Shown: positions 41,590 through 64,000 of the stretch, piece after piece
Numbering within the stretch: position 1 is the first letter of the stretch
How the letters are laid out: each line of letters starts with the position of its first letter
Assembly (NCBI RefSeq): GCF_000143415.4
Contig: NW_003314354.1
Span: 286,575 to 350,574, forward strand
Direction of reading: 5' to 3'
DNA from: Selaginella moellendorffii
Lineage: Eukaryota; Plantae; Lycopodiophyta
Length of the DNA stretch: 64,000 nt
Notes under the pieces: generated by a model
Databases searched by the model: none
What the model was told of the DNA's origin: nothing
The model's input: only the letters and a program-made list of their open reading frames with translations
Position numbers and translations under genes: made by a program

Positions 41590-42700
41590 GACTTACATTG
41601 TGTGTGGCCACTTCTTTGATGGTTTCTTTCAAGTCCTGCGTGTTCAGATCGCCAAGAGCTAGCTCCAGTTCTTCCACAGTGATGTACCTGACCGATGAAA
41701 AAACTTGGAACAATAAAAATGAGAGTTTTACGCTGTTATCCTTGCCGAGACACTGGAAAGCCGACTTTTGTTGAGATGCATGGTCGCCGTGATCGATTGA
41801 GGCCAATTTCAGCAGCGCCAGCCTTGAAGGACAAAATGAAAAACGAAACAAAAATACACTAAGCAAACTTCCGACATCGTGTTCTGTGAGAGTGGATCCC
41901 AAGTTTACAAGTCCGGCTTTTAACTCGTCGTACGTGATCGTCCCCCTCCACAACAAGCAGATTTAGATTAGCCAAGGCTAACCATCAAATCAGCTCGGCT
42001 TTCCTCTGGATCTTCGAGGGCCTTCCTTTCAGAAAAACAAGCTTTTTCTTTGCTTTTTCACAGTAACCTCTGCACAAGCATATGCTACGTAAGATAAAAC
42101 ATTCCTAGAGCTATACGTACCTGGCCAACTAAAGAAGAAAGAATGGAGAGCCTTTCCTCCCTGTAAATCCTGTCTAAATCCGAGTTGCAACCTCAGACAG
42201 ACTCTCGGCAATCACCTGGATGACAAATTCTTGAAGGAATGCAAAACAGAGAAGAGCGTCACCTTAAAAGTGCAAGCTTTTTGAGCTTGTTCATGGGCAG
42301 AAAACTGCTTCATTCGCGACAGCACTGGGTTGTCCAGCGGACCTCTGGTGCCTCGCCATCTTCTTTGAGCCAAGGGAGGATTCGACGACGTGATCAAAGC
42401 GAAGCGTTATTCTAGAAATCACAGAGCCTGCTTAATGTCCCGAGAAACATCTTACCAGTAGACACTCCTTTGGTCTTGCGCAGCAAATCCTTGGCGATCA
42501 AAGGTTGCTGGAAAGATCGAGGTGGCCGCGAAGAAATGCATCCTTGCTGAGATTTCTGTTTAAGATGATCTTTTACCAGCCCAGAAAGGTGAAACACCAA
42601 TGTATGCGATGACTTCAGCACTCCATGCACCGGCATAGTTGAGTCTAAGAACTGCCAGCAAGATCTTTGAAGGCCTCACCTGGAAGAAAGAAGGAACAAA
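41590..42700 (-). pseudogene. Calcium-dependent protein kinase (CDPK) pseudogene
   Basis: Fragments FKDLAGSS, WSAEVIAYIGVSPFWA, PLDNPVLSRMKQFSA, GTITYDELKAGL and YITVEELELAL, with deletions and frameshifts. A short second copy lies at ~44485-44535. Confidence 0.85.
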
Positions 42701-43186
42701 ACTGAAAAAAGAAGGGAAGTGCCAGGTACATATGATGAAGAACGAATGCGTTTTTGCCTGGAAGGAAAACGTTCTCACACAGGGAGGAAGATGAGAAACA
42801 ACGAAGAAAAACGGACGAAGAAAGTAGGCGAAAGCATATACCGATCGATCGATCTAAGTTTGAGATTAAAGCATGGTTCCAGGAAGAAAAAGAAACAAGA
42901 AGAGGAAAGAAGAAGATTTCCAAGATTTACGTATAGAATAGTAGGAACTGATCGATCAAAGACCCAACAAAACGAAAGAAAAAATACTAGCACATTTTAG
43001 GCCTTACAACCGGCATATTCCCAAAGGAGAATATGTTCATAGAAAGGAGAACATTCTTAGGTATAAAAGGCAATTTTTGAAAAGATCTAACCCTCCAAGC
43101 GAACTACACGTGGCGAAATCCCAGCTATTGCGCACGCCTATATATCGAGGACTGAGGGAAAGGGTTTCGTCAAACAGACTAGGGGA

Positions 43187-44227
43187 ATGGCGTGGTGGAA
43201 GAGCGTCATCGCCCCGTTCACGCGCAGGCCCCCGCGCTACTGGGACTTGCCTCACAGGTTCGCTGTCCTAGTCGCCAGCTCCCTCTTGTGGATCGGGCTC
43301 GGCAGCATCCCTCTCTATGGCATGGCCAAGACGCCGGCGGCTGGCTGGGCATGGGTGCGCGAGGTGTTCGCATCCAGCCCAGGAACTCTCGCAGACCTGG
43401 GAGTGATATGCTTGGTGGCTGCTAGTCAAGCCAGGGTGAGGGTGAGACTCGGGTGGGATGTGCCCAAGCCCGAAGACAAAGTCACAAAGTTCGTCATGTT
43501 TGGCGTGTCGCTCCTCGTCCCAGTGCTGCCCCTTGCTGCCGGTCGCTATGGACGTGATCTCGGTCTTGTCAAGGCGCTGCTGCTCTATGCCCAGCTTGCC
43601 TTTGCGAATTGCGTCGCGTGTTTGCTCGTGATTGCCAACGAATTTCGGTTCTGGGGAGTAGGAGTTACCATTGCCGAGCTCCTCCCGGTGGCGATGCTGG
43701 GCAAGAGCTTGGTTGTCAAGGCTCTTGGCAGCAGCGAGGGGCTTGGCACTGGGAATGAAGTGGTGAGCTTGTGGAGCGTTCTTGCCACAGTCACCTTTGT
43801 GGCGGTCACGTACAAGCTCCACAGGAATTCGATGTTCACGCTGTTTGAAGTCTCGGACTGGCTGCGTCCGGTACAGGTTCTCGCCATGGCGGCATGGATC
43901 TCGGGCATCCTTTTTCCCAGACACTTTGCAACGCTGTTCGAGGGACGCGGCTTGATCTTGGTGCCGGTGGCGATGGGTTTACTGTTCAAGGCTTTTGCGG
44001 CGTGGGAGAGTTGGGAGCTGGGCTCGTCGGAGACGAATGCTTTTGCCGGGGTGGCGGCTGGAGTGCTGTGCGTGGTGGCGGCTGCCACAGGATGCGTGGG
44101 CTCGGCTTTTGGATGGCTGATAGTTTGTCGTCTGGTCGTCGAACTTCAAGGCTCGGTGCGCTCTGCGATCATGTGCAAGCGGAGAATGGAGCAAGAGAAG
44201 GCAAAGGCATCAAATCAAACCTTGTAA
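43187..44227 (+). CDS. Highly divergent, intronless Sec61-alpha/SecY-like protein (346 aa)
   Basis: LGSIPLYG..WVREVFASSPGTLADLGV matches Sec61a CSQLPLYG..WMRVILASNRGTVMELGI. GRYG..LGLVKALLLYAQL matches GMYG..LGVGNAILIILQL. AFAGVAAGVLCVVAAATGCVGSAFGWLI matches [28 protein letters not shown]. Confidence 0.8.
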   Translation: MAWWKSVIAPFTRRPPRYWDLPHRFAVLVASSLLWIGLGSIPLYGMAKTPAAGWAWVREVFASSPGTLADLGVICLVAASQARVRVRLGWDVPKPEDKVTKFVMFGVSLLVPVLPLAAGRYGRDLGLVKALLLYAQLAFANCVACLLVIANEFRFWGVGVTIAELLPVAMLGKSLVVKALGSSEGLGTGNEVVSLWSVLATVTFVAVTYKLHRNSMFTLFEVSDWLRPVQVLAMAAWISGILFPRHFATLFEGRGLILVPVAMGLLFKAFAAWESWELGSSETNAFAGVAAGVLCVVAAATGCVGSAFGWLIVCRLVVELQGSVRSAIMCKRRMEQEKAKASNQTL

Positions 44228-44782
44228 CTTCTACGCGTTTGTCATTGCAACATTGCATAGAAACTGAAACTCTTGGGATCGCGAATATTCGTTTGTTTTG
44301 AATTTTTCTAATAGAAAACAAGTGGAGCCGAGAAAAGCTCAATTTGGAGTGATCTTAGGAGCTTGTCCTTGATTAACCATAAGATCATCTTTCGGGTGAT
44401 AAACACTTGTTTTTTTAGAGTGATTCTTGTGAGTGTGTCTTCATACCTTCCTCCACTCTCATCACGAGAGAGCTTCTGACGAATTCAAAGCTTGTTCATG
44501 GCAGGAAACTGCTTCATTTGCGACATGCCATCTTCTTAAAGATGGTTTAAAAATGACAAAGCTTTTGTGCTTCACAAACATTTTGTGTGTTTAAGGTTTG
44601 ATGGCAAAAGCTTTTAAAACTACCTCGCAGTATAATCACCTACAATAGCATAAGTCACCTACATAAGTCGCCTGTGATACCTCTCTACAAATGGCGAGAC
44701 CCCAGGCCACGTGTTGTAGTGTTATTGGTCCACGTATGCTTCGAGTGAGTTTATATTGTGTTTCTAGGGTTTCCAAGGATTA

Positions 44783-46308
44783 ATGGCGGTGTGGGTGAAA
44801 GGCAATGGCGAGGAGGCTCGACTCTTCCGGCTCCATAACTCGAGGTATCTCATGCTCTGCTCGATTGCAGCGCACTGGGGCTTCGACCCCGACACGCTCC
44901 TCGTGGGTCGCTTTGCCCTCTCCATGGACAAAAGCGGCAACTCCGTCTCAGACGTGGACGAGATCCGGGCATACTCAGCGGGCGCGGGCGATGGTCTCAC
45001 AGATCAGACTCCATTTGTCATCACCGGGAAGCCAGCACATACGATCTGGACCAGTTCCTCTTCGAGGAAACCGACACTAGAGGAGACGTTCGTGGCTGCG
45101 GCAATTACAGATGAGGATTTCAAGAAGCTATCCTACACAGAATCCAGGAGTGTGCGTCCATACAGATCGCGCTTGGTGTATCAGCGGTTCAAGGCGATGA
45201 GGCAGGAACTCATCATCGACGAGTCTGGAGTTCATCACTACATACGTGCGAAGGACGATTTAGGCAGTGCAGTTGCCCCGTTTGTGGGAGCTCTTCACAT
45301 CGTCCCGAATGGATCAAGGTTCGATGGCAGTGCACGTCGCCCAGTTGGAATGGTATCACTGGTTCGCTGCGACGGTTACTGCTTGACTGCGGCTCAATGT
45401 CTGGAAGGTTTCGATGGTGATGACAACACTATCTTCGTCAGCTTCCCACGGATGAGCGGCAGCGGGGATAATTCTTGCTTTTACGAGTGTAAGATTGCCA
45501 AGGCCGAAGAGTTTGTGGTGCACTTGGAGGCTAAAGAGCAACAAAGCTTCAAGACTTGCATGGCTACCCGATTTGGACCTGCCTCTGGCTCAGTTTTCAT
45601 GTTCAGCGGCCCCAACAGCACGCAACTCGTGGAGTGTCCGATGGTTGATTCGTTCGTATGTCCATTCGAGGGCATTGTATTGCCGAGCGCGAAGATCGAC
45701 CACAAGCTTTCGCTGGGAGGTCCTGTTGTCAACTGTGTCGGCGAGATGATAGGGGTGATTATTGCACACAGCCTACTGAAGAAGAGCAGCGACTCGAGAG
45801 GAAAAGCGTGCGTTACCCGGTTTGGAACCAAGATGAAAGTGCAAAGTGTTTCGGACTTGCAGGAGTTTCTAGATGATGCACTGAAATGGAAGAACGTCAA
45901 CAACAAGCTGGGCAGCACTCGAGGCGATGCAAAATATGAGAGTTAAGTTCATTGATCCTTCTTTCTGGTTCTCATTTTTCTTTTCTTTTTTTTTCTTTCT
46001 TGTCTTTCAGTGTGGAAAAATTGCTTGGAACTCAGGAGGTTGGTCCAGTGCACGGGAGCTGACTTCATTTCTCCCGCTCAGGAGTGGTATTCGCAGCATC
46101 CACTGTCAGGTTCGTAGACATCTATTTGATCTTTTTGATCGAGTAGTTACCAATGTATTCCTCGCTTGCAGAATTTATCAACAGCGCTGTGACGGAGTTT
46201 AATGCTCCACCGCTTAAGCGTCCGAAAGTTAAATACGTCCCCATGTCCGAGGAGAAAATCCAGAAGTTTTACAAAGAGCAGGAAGCTGTCAGAGAGGTTT
46301 TTTTCTAG
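44783..46308 (+). CDS. Uncharacterised protein: N-terminal Ubl-like header plus inactive trypsin-like domain; exons 44783-45941, 46011-46109, 46172-46308
   Basis: CLTAAQCL (cf. TAAHC) and KLSLGGPVVNCVGEMIGV (cf. GxSGGPV). Two GT-AG introns extend the frame in phase to PPLKRPKVK..EAVREVFF*. A telo-box (TAGGGTTT) lies just upstream. Confidence 0.7.
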
Positions 46309-47819: not shown

Positions 47820-50700
47820 CTAGCAGAGACCCCAGCTCCGCTGGGAGATATAGCATACCCAAGATCTTCTTTTCTAATTCTACAATGTTAAAAATTTTGA
47901 TTATATACAAGTTCAAATGATATTATATCAATTGTTATAAGATATAATTTCTTTCTCTTGATATCAATTGTTTAAATGCAAAAGACTGGCATTCTGGCCA
48001 TGCACAGCTCTACATGACTCAATGCCATACAACTCCAAACCATTGGGATGCCTTTGAAGGAAGACATCACTCGAGCTCTTCAGTCAACTTTGCTCCTGGA
48101 TTCAGCAAGACACAGGTGGCCTTGCATCCACAAACAATGAGCTCCTCCTGTACAAGTGCCTCTTTATGGGGCAAAACCGTCACAAAAAATGAATAAAAGC
48201 ATTTCAACCCTTTTACCATGTGTTTTAATCTAGGCAGTCATTTGAAAGTGATCAAATAGTAACTGCCCAAGTCCTCCATGTGAGAATGGAATTGAGAGAT
48301 AACATATAATAAGTAAAGAAAAGATTCTTAATCAGCAAATCAGCAAACATGACAACAGATGATGTACCTGCTGACAAATCTTGCAGATGGTGTCCTCTTT
48401 TTTGTTGCACCAGTGCTACACATGCGTTTGATGAGCATACTACCAAACACAAAAGAGAGAAAAAAAATGAGGAAGAGCCAGAAAATTGCTTAGAACTCTC
48501 AGACCACATATTATAGAAAATTATAAGATTATTAAGATCTAGAAAATTTCTGTTCAATCATAAAATTAAAATTAAATTATTAAACACAGCAACTATCTAA
48601 AGGAGAACATGATTATCAACAAACATAGATTATAAGACATATTAATATATTTTATAAACATAGATCTAGCACTTAAATAATAATATTGTTATATTTTTTT
48701 ATGGTACTATAATTAATAGAGTGTAATAACATTATCACTGCTAGATTATATATATTAATCTATATATGTGGTCTTAGAACTCTCAGACTAAGTATTTCAG
48801 TCTTCAAGATTAGCATTTTCTACAACATCCATCTTACATTATGTAAATATCATATAATAGTGTATTACAGAGTTCAGTAGTTATAACAGAATCCATAATC
48901 TTAGCAGAGACCCCAGCTCCACTGGGAGATATAACATACCCAAGATAATTAATTCTTCTTTTCTAATTTTACAATATTAGAAAATTTTATTATATATAAA
49001 GTTAAATTTATCTAAAATTTCCTAGTATTCATCTCCAAAGAAATGTACAATAATGTAAATAAATAATAATGCATGTTGGGGAAGTAAAATCATTTTTTAT
49101 TGTCATTAAATTTGAATTTGATGTTTTTATTGTCTTTATTTAAAAATGCACAACCCTAAATACATCTACAGGATTGCTGTCATGCTTTAAAAGCAATTAA
49201 ATTTTCACAAAACCAAAGAATCATAGACTACCAAAAAATAATAGATTAGTTTAGAGAAATTATAATTTTAATTGCATACTGAGTTAAATTCCTTTTATGT
49301 GAACTATAATGATGCCTCTAACATTCACACTTTACTAAATAAAAATAGAATTTCTATTATATGTCTGGTTTAACATTTTAAAACATACATAAATAAATCT
49401 ATCTAGCTTGCTACCACGTTTTGTTTTATTTGAGAAAACTCTGGAATTTCAACATTTTGGGAGGTCATCCTACTCTAACCCTAAGATATTAAACCCCCCG
49501 AGTATCCTAATACCCTTAACCAATTGGAATAAAATGTGCACTTTTATTTAAAAATCCTTTCCCTTTATATTTAATTTTATATATATCATCTTTCAAATTA
49601 TTCTTTTTTGTTGCATATAATCCACCATACTTCTTTTGTAAGTTTACACCCTCATGAATGAAAGCTTATAACCATCACTCTCCTAAGACCCGTGCTCTCT
49701 TGCCATAGCAAGGATCCCAGCTCTGCTGGGAATGTATCTTGGTTGGCAAACTTACTATTTTAAATGCATACAAGGTTAATTTGTCAAGAATTTACTACCA
49801 TCTATATTCATTGTATCGTGCATTCGTTATATCATTATGATTTATTAGTTGGTGGAACTGAAGATGGTTGGAATATTTATCATCTGGATGTCAAGCCATA
49901 AGAGATAGCAATGAGTAGTTTATANNNNNNNNNNNNNNNNNNNNNNNNNNNNNNNNNNNNNNNNNNNNNNNNNNNNNNNNNNNNNNNNNNNNNNNNNNNN
50001 NNNNNNNNNNNNNNNNNNNNNNNNTCTAGTCTTGTACTGTATTTTCTATTGTATCTACTATATACCCATCTTTGCACAACAAAATTATGTTTAATTTTAA
50101 TAATATAGTATTGAATCAATAAAATACTCTTTGTTCTGTAAAGGTTTTGTTCTATAGAACAATGAGTATGCTGAAATATTTTCAGGGAGATATATCATAC
50201 CCAAGATAAATAGATCTTCATTTTTAATTGTTCAATGTTAAAATTTTTGATTGTATGCAAGGTTAAATTTATCTTAATTTTGCAACTATTCATCTCCAGA
50301 GAAATGGAAAATAATGCAATTAGATAATGATGCAAATGTTTGGGAAGATAAGATCATATTTTAATCATCACTAAATTCGAAATTGAATTCTTCTATTGCC
50401 TTTATAAAAAAGTACAAAAACCTTAACACATTTACAAGATTGCTGCCATGATTTAAAATAAATTAAATGCTCATTAAAAAAAAATGTATACTAACAAAAC
50501 ATAATAGGTTAATTTTGGGAAATTATAATTTTGATTGCATATTGAGCTAAAGTGTTTTTATCTGAACTGTAATAATACCTTTAACATTAATTTTTACTTA
50601 ACTGTAATATTGCCTCTAAATTGCATAGTTTACTAAAGAATAATAAAATTTCTATTATATATTTGTTTTTACATTTAAAAATATACTTAAAGTAGATATA
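47820..50700 (-). mobile_element. Cluster of non-autonomous Helitron-like AT-rich elements (3' ends at ~47820, ~48901, ~49705; body copy at 50183-50700)
   Basis: Minus strand CCCAGC-GGA-GCTGGG hairpin, a short spacer, then CTAG|T at 47820. Near-identical ends at 48901-48930. 48925-49400 is repeated at 50183-50700. Confidence 0.6.
49925..50023. other. Assembly gap (N run)
   Basis: Run of Ns. Confidence 1.
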
Positions 50701-63206: not shown

Positions 63207-64000
63207 ATGGCTTTGTGGATCCTCACGCACCCGTTTTCGCGCAGGCCCCCGAGGTACTGGGGCTTGCCTCACAGGTTCACCGTCCTAGCGGCGATCTCCC
63301 TGCTGTGGATAGCTCTCGGCAGCATCCCGCTCTATGGTATGTCCAAGACGCCGGCAGCTGGCTGGGCATGGGTGCGCGAGGTGTTCGCATCCAGCCCAGG
63401 AACTCTCACAGACCTGGGAGTGATATGCTTGGTGGCTGCTAGTCAGGTGAGGGTGAGGTTGCCAATGAGCGAGGAGGTGCCCATGCCCGAAGACAAAGTA
63501 ACGAAGTTCGTCATGTTTGGCGTGTCGCTGCTCCTCCCAGTGCTGCCCCTTGCTGCTGGTCGCTATGGAAGTGATCTCGGTGTTCTCAAGGCGCTGCTGC
63601 TCTATGCCCAGCTCTGCCTTGCGAATTGCGTCGCGTGCTTGCTCGTGATTGCCTGCGAGTTTCGGCGCTGGGGAATAGGAGTTGACATTGCGGAGCTCCT
63701 CCCGGCGGCGACTCTGGCCAAGAGCTTGGTTGTCAAGGCGTTGAGCCCTTTCCCTCCAGCGGCACCGGTTAGTGGCAGAAGGTTTGAAGGTGCGCTGCTT
63801 CACGGGCTGTCTGTGGTGCGTGGCAATTACAGTGGGAGTGCGTTTTATAGTGCTCTTGGCACCGGCGGCGGCGGCGATCTTGCTTCTGGGAATGAAGTGG
63901 TGAGCTTGTGGAGTGTGCTTGCCACAGTCACTTTTGTGGCGGCCGCGTACAAACTCCAGAAGAATCGGAAGTTCACGCTCTTTCAAGTCTCGGACTGGCT
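63207..64000 (+). CDS. Second copy of the divergent Sec61-alpha-like gene, open to the window end
   Basis: MALWILTHPFSRRPPRYWGLPHRF..GSIPLYG.., no stop to 64000. Retains KALSPF..SGRRFEGALLHGL..AFYS (cf. Sec61a KAFSP..GRGxEFEGAV..AFYR). Confidence 0.82.
   Translation, partial: MALWILTHPFSRRPPRYWGLPHRFTVLAAISLLWIALGSIPLYGMSKTPAAGWAWVREVFASSPGTLTDLGVICLVAASQVRVRLPMSEEVPMPEDKVTKFVMFGVSLLLPVLPLAAGRYGSDLGVLKALLLYAQLCLANCVACLLVIACEFRRWGIGVDIAELLPAATLAKSLVVKALSPFPPAAPVSGRRFEGALLHGLSVVRGNYSGSAFYSALGTGGGGDLASGNEVVSLWSVLATVTFVAAAYKLQKNRKFTLFQVSDW

Follow-up and report, generated by a model that had tools for sequence, protein, structure and literature searches.

Intronless Sec61-alpha-derived genes lacking the ribosome-docking loops form a small tandem family in Selaginella moellendorffii

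A stretch of 64,000 nucleotides of the Selaginella moellendorffii genome, hereafter the window, carries an intact single-exon open reading frame (ORF) of 346 codons that encodes an extremely diverged homologue of the translocon subunit Sec61-alpha. The window is 100% identical, 100-N gap included, to scaffold GL377658.1:286575-350574. The ORF, named here copy A, runs uninterrupted from ATG to TAA at 43187-44227 of the forward strand and is one of three tandem copies, A, B and C, spaced about 20 kb apart. The products of the two intact copies lack loops 6/7 and 8/9 on the cytosolic side. We favour, with somewhat better than even confidence, the reading that these genes form a fast-evolving and dispensable family of intronless Sec61-alpha derivatives, restricted to S. 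moellendorffii and following a birth-and-death course.

Sequence comparison identifies the copy A product unambiguously as a true, if extremely diverged, Sec61-alpha homologue. Alignment by hhalign to 18 canonical Sec61-alpha sequences gives a probability of 98% and E 1.3e-13 over residues 4-180. A phmmer search against all PDB chains returns solely Sec61-alpha/SecY proteins, the best match (E 8.6e-9) pairing residues 7-205 with residues 14-225 of Sec61-alpha. Since the first hhalign alignment ended at transmembrane segment (TM) 5, the carboxyl-terminal halves were tested separately. Alone, they align collinearly from TM6 to TM10 with E 1.8e-5 and a score of 40.1, against 13.6 +/- 2.6 (maximum 25.2) for 200 column shuffles and 15.1 for the reversed sequence. 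Per-column confidence in this half is high in TM9-TM10 only, a stretch that is also the second one matched by phmmer. The hydropathy profile of copy A displays ten peaks in the order of Sec61-alpha. An earlier note on this DNA, made by eye, had aligned the protein along the whole of Sec61-alpha from TM1 to TM10. Profile alignment upholds this for both halves, but the Pfam SecY profile PF00344 gives no match to copy A, its allele or copy B even at E <= 10. The Plug_translocon profile PF10559 stays below its cut-off of 22.1 bits with 15.0-18.1 bits (15.0 for copy A, residues 38-66), although the plug motif is visibly kept in the alignment. Identity of the family to all Sec61/SecY rows is evenly 21-26%, with no affinity to plants. 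As the proteins are annotated merely as 'hypothetical' and escape Pfam, recognition of their Sec61 derivation is a new annotation.

Structure prediction superposed on Sec61, proposed earlier as a check, agrees for the fold, with low confidence in the second half. An AlphaFold model built from 26 sequences has ten transmembrane helices and a plug helix collinear with Sec61-alpha. The 50 best Foldseek matches of this model are all Sec61/SecY structures (50/50, TMq 0.55-0.60 over the full length), including the Ssh1 structure 2ww9. For the N half, superposition gives an rmsd of about 3.1-3.2 Å over about 180 columns. The mean predicted local distance difference test score (pLDDT) is 55, with 60-84 in the N half and 34-49 in the C half, so that the model is usable for the N half only. 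AlphaFold run on the three family sequences alone yields a pLDDT of 37, and a search of the ESM Atlas for look-alikes returned only noise (scores <= 0.79, TM < 0.5).

The lost segments were mapped on a MAFFT alignment with 23 canonical rows and are given in plant Sec61-alpha numbering. Residues 261-284 of loop 6/7 (FQGFRVVLPVRSKNARGQQGSYPI, 24 residues) and residues 392-423 of loop 8/9, about 32-34 residues including a universally conserved arginine, have no partner in copy A. Residues 313-322, 354-362 and 372-380, three separate pieces that belong to lumenal loop 7/8 and the beginning of TM8, are also unpartnered, as are residues 200-235 of the TM5/TM6 hinge (about 36-41 residues), which are missing from copy A only, copy B keeping its hinge. 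At loop 8/9, WELGSSETN joins AFAGV directly, exactly as the earlier note had read it. The loss of loop 6/7 stands as well, but not the pairing by eye of FTLFEVSD with IKLFYTSN that accompanied it: MAFFT pairs KLHRNS with KLFYTS, and the register of TM7 is ambiguous. The claim that deletions are confined to loops is upheld; loop 7/8 is trimmed too, and copy A has lost the hinge. Loops 6/7 and 8/9 provide the main contacts with the ribosome and likewise with SecA; in the mammalian ribosome-Sec61 structure the universally conserved arginine of loop 8/9 stacks on 28S ribosomal RNA (PMC4081569). Plant R407 is the counterpart of this ribosome-contacting arginine, the basic docking residues of the human protein being R273 and R405. 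Because sequence and established structural knowledge agree, the predicted loss of the docking surface for the ribosome, SecA and Sec63 is well supported.

Conservation was audited over the 100 alignment columns in which the canonical rows reach a conservation of 85% or more. Of these near-invariant positions, 42 are kept and 18 deleted in copy A, against 47 kept and 11 deleted in copy B. All conserved positions of loop 6/7 (G263, P283, I284) and of loop 8/9 (Q395, G405, R407, L415, Y418, I419) are deleted in both copies. Substitutions affect D62, P63, R75, P85, D169, E170, G181, R239, G426 and G446. The positions kept include PLYG, R68, the AS..GT..LG block of the plug, Y140-G141, Q157-L158, W381 and the glycines of TM9/10.

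The earlier note had also described copy A as intact and intronless, with a second open copy nearby, and both statements are confirmed. None of 20000 composition-preserving shuffles (0/20000) keeps open a frame as long as that of copy A. The protein is annotated exactly on GL377658.1 as a single exon, and so is its allele SELMODRAFT_423035 (344 residues, 98% identical) on the scaffold of the other haplotype, GL377624.1; the RNA data contain no splice joints inside the ORF. Its GC content is 59.5%, and 70.5% at third codon positions (GC3), within a window of 45% GC and flanks of 40-44%. Compared to plant Sec61-alpha, the protein contains more Ala, Val and Trp (4% Trp) and less Ile, Asn and Tyr. 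Copy B starts at 63207, encodes an intact protein of 390 residues and extends past the window end. Like copy A it lacks loops 6/7 and 8/9, but it has the hinge loop. Its allele SELMODRAFT_423037 (393 residues) is modelled as the bare ORF, whereas the NCBI model on the present haplotype is 680 residues long, 290 of which come from upstream exons (window-equivalent about 61915-64379, L005:6001-8465). The hinge of copy B carries the eukaryote-type motifs GRRFEGALL and AFYSAL. The FEGA/AFY motifs are missing from the alignment rows most divergent from plant Sec61-alpha, which are probably archaeal. The eukaryote-type motifs point to a eukaryotic Sec61-alpha as the ancestor.

Copy C, SELMODRAFT_427691 (L002:7244-8400; GL377658.1 about 369850-371000), lies 12-20 kb past the window end. 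It is 98.4-98.8% identical to copy B and is broken by a 143-bp frameshift deletion, with two further deletions of 9 bp. Its NCBI model of 615 residues is a chimera in which Gly/Trp-rich exons from upstream precede the N half, after which the model continues in the wrong frame. SELMODRAFT_427691 was considered as a broken allele of copy B and rejected on its placement, which makes it a third tandem copy 20 kb past B. Copies B and C have at least 2.3 kb of upstream flank in common. Self-comparison of the window confines the similarity of A and B to the coding region, starting 28 bp before the ATG (43159). Relatives were searched among 5.8 billion proteins by word index and among 1.84 billion representatives exhaustively. 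The close relatives found in both sets are these S. moellendorffii proteins only; canonical Sec61-alpha appears at E >= 2e-6 only, save for one duplicated rice model. Four candidate 'minimal SecY' proteins (P0007, P0009, P0010, P0014) were discarded as truncated canonical sequences. In the literature we found no paper tying such Sec61 paralogues to Selaginella or to plant retrogenes.

Selection was assessed with Nei-Gojobori estimates of non-synonymous (dN) and synonymous (dS) divergence and of their ratio omega. Between A and B, dN is 0.15-0.16, dS 0.24-0.28 and omega 0.55-0.66. Omega is 0.28 between the alleles of copy A (6 non-synonymous and 7 synonymous changes) and 0.48 between those of copy B (10 and 7). 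Fisher tests place omega below 1 for A against B (p 0.005 and 0.0013) and for the pooled alleles (p 0.017). The indels that separate A from B all have lengths divisible by three, and the frame is intact in both copies on both haplotypes. In a neutral simulation started from copy A, the probability that a lineage stays free of stops since the A/B split is about 0.014. Purifying selection on the reading frame is thus significant but weak, and this qualifies the comparison of copies that had been proposed as a check: omega is significantly below 1, yet the constraint it reveals is slight. In the tree the family branch exceeds 3.4 substitutions per site and is of deviant composition, compared to about 0.04 for the tips of land-plant Sec61-alpha. 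Saturation and composition rule out phylogenetic placement of a parent or donor.

Transcription of the locus was followed in RNA data. In run X1, mismatch-free contigs cover 43496-44231 in pieces at a depth of about 6, with zero coverage at 42000-43495 and 44232-44794. The neighbouring gene is present in this run with its GT..AG intron (46106 to 46169) removed; the run thus has the behaviour of RNA, which means that copy A is transcribed. Run X2 contains a contig of 513 nt with 8 differences, among them the change to GSGEG as in the other allele. In two runs of stranded raw reads, the reads of the ORF have the orientation of those of the neighbour on the + strand and are therefore sense. Almost every one of these reads shows the differences of copy B, and their loose end before 43954 fits only copy B of the present haplotype. 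Sense transcripts come from both intact copies, at a low level. RNA sequencing, another check proposed earlier, thus finds A and B transcribed, but weakly.

The favoured reading brings these data together as follows. The three tandem intronless copies would descend from a eukaryotic Sec61-alpha. Their products appear to retain the SecY core with its ten helices, together with the plug region and the glycine packing of TM9/10, and have lost loops 6/7 and 8/9, most of loop 7/8, more than half of the near-invariant positions and, in copy A, the TM5/6 hinge. Deprived of loops 6/7 and 8/9, they would be unable to dock a ribosome or a partner of the Sec63/SecA type, and loss of these loops would make the canonical role in co-translational translocation impossible. 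They are most likely proteins of the endoplasmic reticulum membrane whose residual activity, if any, would come from the membrane-embedded core alone. This core could pair with Sec61-gamma/beta or with transmembrane segments at the lateral gate. Copy C is a very recent duplicate of copy B, already frameshifted, pointing to a birth-and-death course rather than to an essential new machine. Selection on the frame, the kept core packing residues and transcription speak for A and B as genes that code for protein or did so until very recently. Weak constraint, large copy-specific deletions, the dead copy C, low expression and occurrence in one species lead us to consider the family dispensable and fast-evolving. 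The intronless structure suggests an origin by retroposition, followed by local duplication of DNA.

Several observations weigh against this reading. The two deep stranded runs contain copy B at low level and copy A near zero. The blocks of highest identity between A and B (residues 41-80 and about 253-316) have a dS of just 0.03-0.10, a sign of gene conversion or recency and not of strong constraint. An omega near 0.6 could average an earlier phase under constraint with neutrality today. Because its branch is saturated, the parent gene of the family is not identifiable by phylogeny. The poor C half of the AlphaFold model (pLDDT 34-49) leaves hydropathy and profile alignment to carry the retention of ten transmembrane segments. 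Retroposition is deduced from the lack of introns only: neither an A-tract left by a poly-A tail after the copy A stop nor a conserved target-site duplication around the copy was found.

The alternative that survives best, possible though clearly less probable, is that A and B are functionless transcribed relics whose frames remain open since constraint was lost recently, copy C displaying their common fate. The frameshift of copy C, the omega of 0.55-0.66, the loss of more than half of the near-universal positions, the large copy-specific deletions such as that of the hinge in copy A, the low or absent expression, the failure of sequence searches to find orthologues and the poor fold confidence are all in line with it. 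It has to accommodate, however, that divergence from any Sec61-alpha is saturated and yet two frames of 346-390 codons are open on both haplotypes. Moreover, the A/B indels are all in frame, even the alleles have an omega significantly below 1, the neutral probability of remaining stop-free since the A/B split is about 0.014 per lineage and the core packing residues are preferentially kept. The frames, the in-frame indels, omega, the neutral simulation and transcription render pure random decay insufficient. The earlier note had argued against random decay, and on these points it was right, but an omega of 0.55-0.66 and the death of copy C limit how far the argument goes.

We regard it as unlikely that the loop-stripped protein of SecY fold is functional, be it as a ribosome-independent conduit assembled with Sec61-gamma/beta or as a regulator that titrates both subunits. 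A dedicated ribosome-uncoupled channel, an alternative alpha subunit for post-translational transport, retro-translocation or ion leak, is quite improbable. The plug, the lateral-gate glutamine and the TM9/10 packing are kept while only partner-docking surfaces are removed, the frame is preserved under some constraint, and yeast Sec61 deprived of lumenal loop 7 is viable and assembles (PMC3897919), so that a loop-trimmed Sec61 can fold. All known Sec systems, however, are opened and driven via loops 6/7 and 8/9 by the ribosome, SecA or Sec63, and no substitute surface is evident in the family. D62, P63, R75, P85, D169, E170, G181, R239, G426 and G446 are all changed, constraint is weak, one copy is dead, expression is low and conservation was not found beyond one species. 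The ribosome-uncoupled channel that the earlier note had put forward is not borne out as a working system: constraint is weak, expression is low, only 42-47 of 100 near-universal positions survive, copy C is already a frameshifted pseudogene, the C half of the AlphaFold model has low confidence and no orthologue was found. To call the locus the best candidate for an undescribed system in the window was an overstatement.

A foreign or mobile-borne gene, acquired horizontally from a eukaryote or virus or captured as a fragment by a transposon, is very improbable: the gene is intronless and GC-rich (59.5%, GC3 70.5%, in a 45% GC window), equally distant from every Sec61/SecY row (21-26% identity) without plant affinity and bracketed by a direct repeat, but a neighbouring host ORF is GC-rich as well, no donor-like sequence was found among the 1.84 billion representatives, no terminal inverted repeats or long terminal repeats were found flanking copy A, the right-hand repeat is missing from the other haplotype and the likeness of A and B is limited to coding sequence. 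The repeat in question is about 38 nt long and roughly 90% identical, its arms lying 2.2 kb apart (42284-42321 and 44489-44525). The other haplotype keeps the left arm; the right arm belongs to a stretch, 44322-44689, that has no counterpart there. Transposon capture was rejected on the lack of inverted repeats, the non-conservation of the direct repeat between haplotypes and the restriction of the A/B common part to the coding region.

Comparison with known systems places the family apart. It has in common with canonical Sec61-alpha (PF00344 and Plug PF10559) the ten transmembrane segments in two halves and in collinear order, as well as PLYG, the plug motif R..FAS.PGT..LG, YG, QL..A, the tryptophan at the end of TM8 and the Gly-rich TM9/10. 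It differs by its length (346-390 residues against about 475), by the absence of loops 6/7 and 8/9, the short loop 7/8, the loss of the hinge in copy A, the intronless genes and the presence in one species. It evolves with omega about 0.6 on a saturated branch, whereas the figure for canonical Sec61-alpha in land plants is about 0.04 substitutions per site. Yeast Ssh1, vertebrate SEC61A2, bacterial accessory SecY2 and plastid SCY2 are alpha subunits that arose by duplication and have diverged from the housekeeping channel. To our knowledge these proteins keep the cytosolic docking loops and work with the ribosome or a SecA2 partner; the Selaginella family, also made of diverged duplicates, has deleted those loops. 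In the yeast sec61 deltaL7 mutant, removal of a large loop still permits assembly and supports viability, but only the lumenal loop is missing there, L6 and L8 are in place and the rest of the protein is wild type (PMC3897919). The Selaginella proteins, in contrast, are trimmed in three or four loops and heavily substituted in the core. The genes resemble plant retrogenes as single-exon copies of a normally intron-containing gene (the Sec61-alpha model P0115, for example, spans 2.8 kb for 477 residues) that were then duplicated locally. They differ from such retrogenes by the lack of a poly-A remnant or conserved target-site duplication and by a parent that saturation makes untraceable.

Sec61-alpha/SecY is among the most conserved membrane proteins, and its two cytosolic loops are regarded as the universal handle by which the ribosome, SecA and Sec63 open the channel. 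A natural SecY core that has no such loops, preserves its frame and is transcribed offers a ready test of folding, gamma/beta binding, leak and insertion. The family exemplifies how fast the SecY core can evolve once freed from its partners and, if functional, it would represent a use of the translocon core not described in any organism. The weak constraint and the dead copy C temper this importance: the family may be a disappearing curiosity of evolution and not a new machine. The features of the locus are collected in Table 1.

Table 1. Features of copies A and B in the window (residue numbers of the copy A protein unless stated as plant Sec61-alpha; TM, transmembrane segment).
Feature	Position	Strand	Remark
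Copy A, intact single-exon ORF, 346 residues, Sec61-alpha-derived	43187..44227	+	Allele of SELMODRAFT_423035
N half, residues 4-180, TM1, plug and TM2-TM5	43196..43726	+	Statistically secure homology: hhalign, phmmer, Foldseek
Best conserved block, residues 42-72, PLYG ... W.R..FASSPGTL.DLG	43310..43402	+	End of TM1, plug helix, start of TM2
Junction L180/G181, gap of TM5/TM6 hinge (about 36-41 residues)	43724..43729	+	Copy A only
Junction Y209/K210, cytosolic loop 6/7 gone (24 residues, plant 261-284)	43811..43816	+	MAFFT alignment
Lumenal loop 7/8, about 25 residues shorter than in plant Sec61-alpha	43913..43954	+	MAFFT alignment
Junction N284/A285, cytosolic loop 8/9 gone (32 residues, plant 392-423, with the universally conserved Arg)	44036..44041	+	
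TM9-TM10, residues 285-320, Gly-rich packing motifs kept (G288, G292, G302, G305, S306, G309)	44039..44146	+	
TATATAT, 42-48 nt upstream of the copy A ATG	43139..43145	+	Sequence only
Copy B, initial 264 codons, ORF continuing past the window end	63207..64000	+	Full ORF 63207-64379 (window-equivalent), 390 residues, intact

The window has other features. The 100-N run at 49925-50024 of the window is an assembly gap in GL377658.1. An ORF of 387 residues at 44783-45946 (+), extending to about 46340, begins 556 bp downstream of copy A. It has no Pfam match even at E <= 10 but displays trypsin-like motifs in which the catalytic residues appear replaced (TAAQC for TAAHC, SLGGP for GDSGGP). It is transcribed in sense and spliced at a GT..AG intron, 46106 to 46169. 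On the other side of copy A, the segment 42184-42551 (-) attracts minus-sense RNA reads that show fixed differences, joints of non-canonical type and loose ends of some length. These reads probably originate from a related expressed locus elsewhere, in which case the segment would be a gene fragment upstream of copy A.

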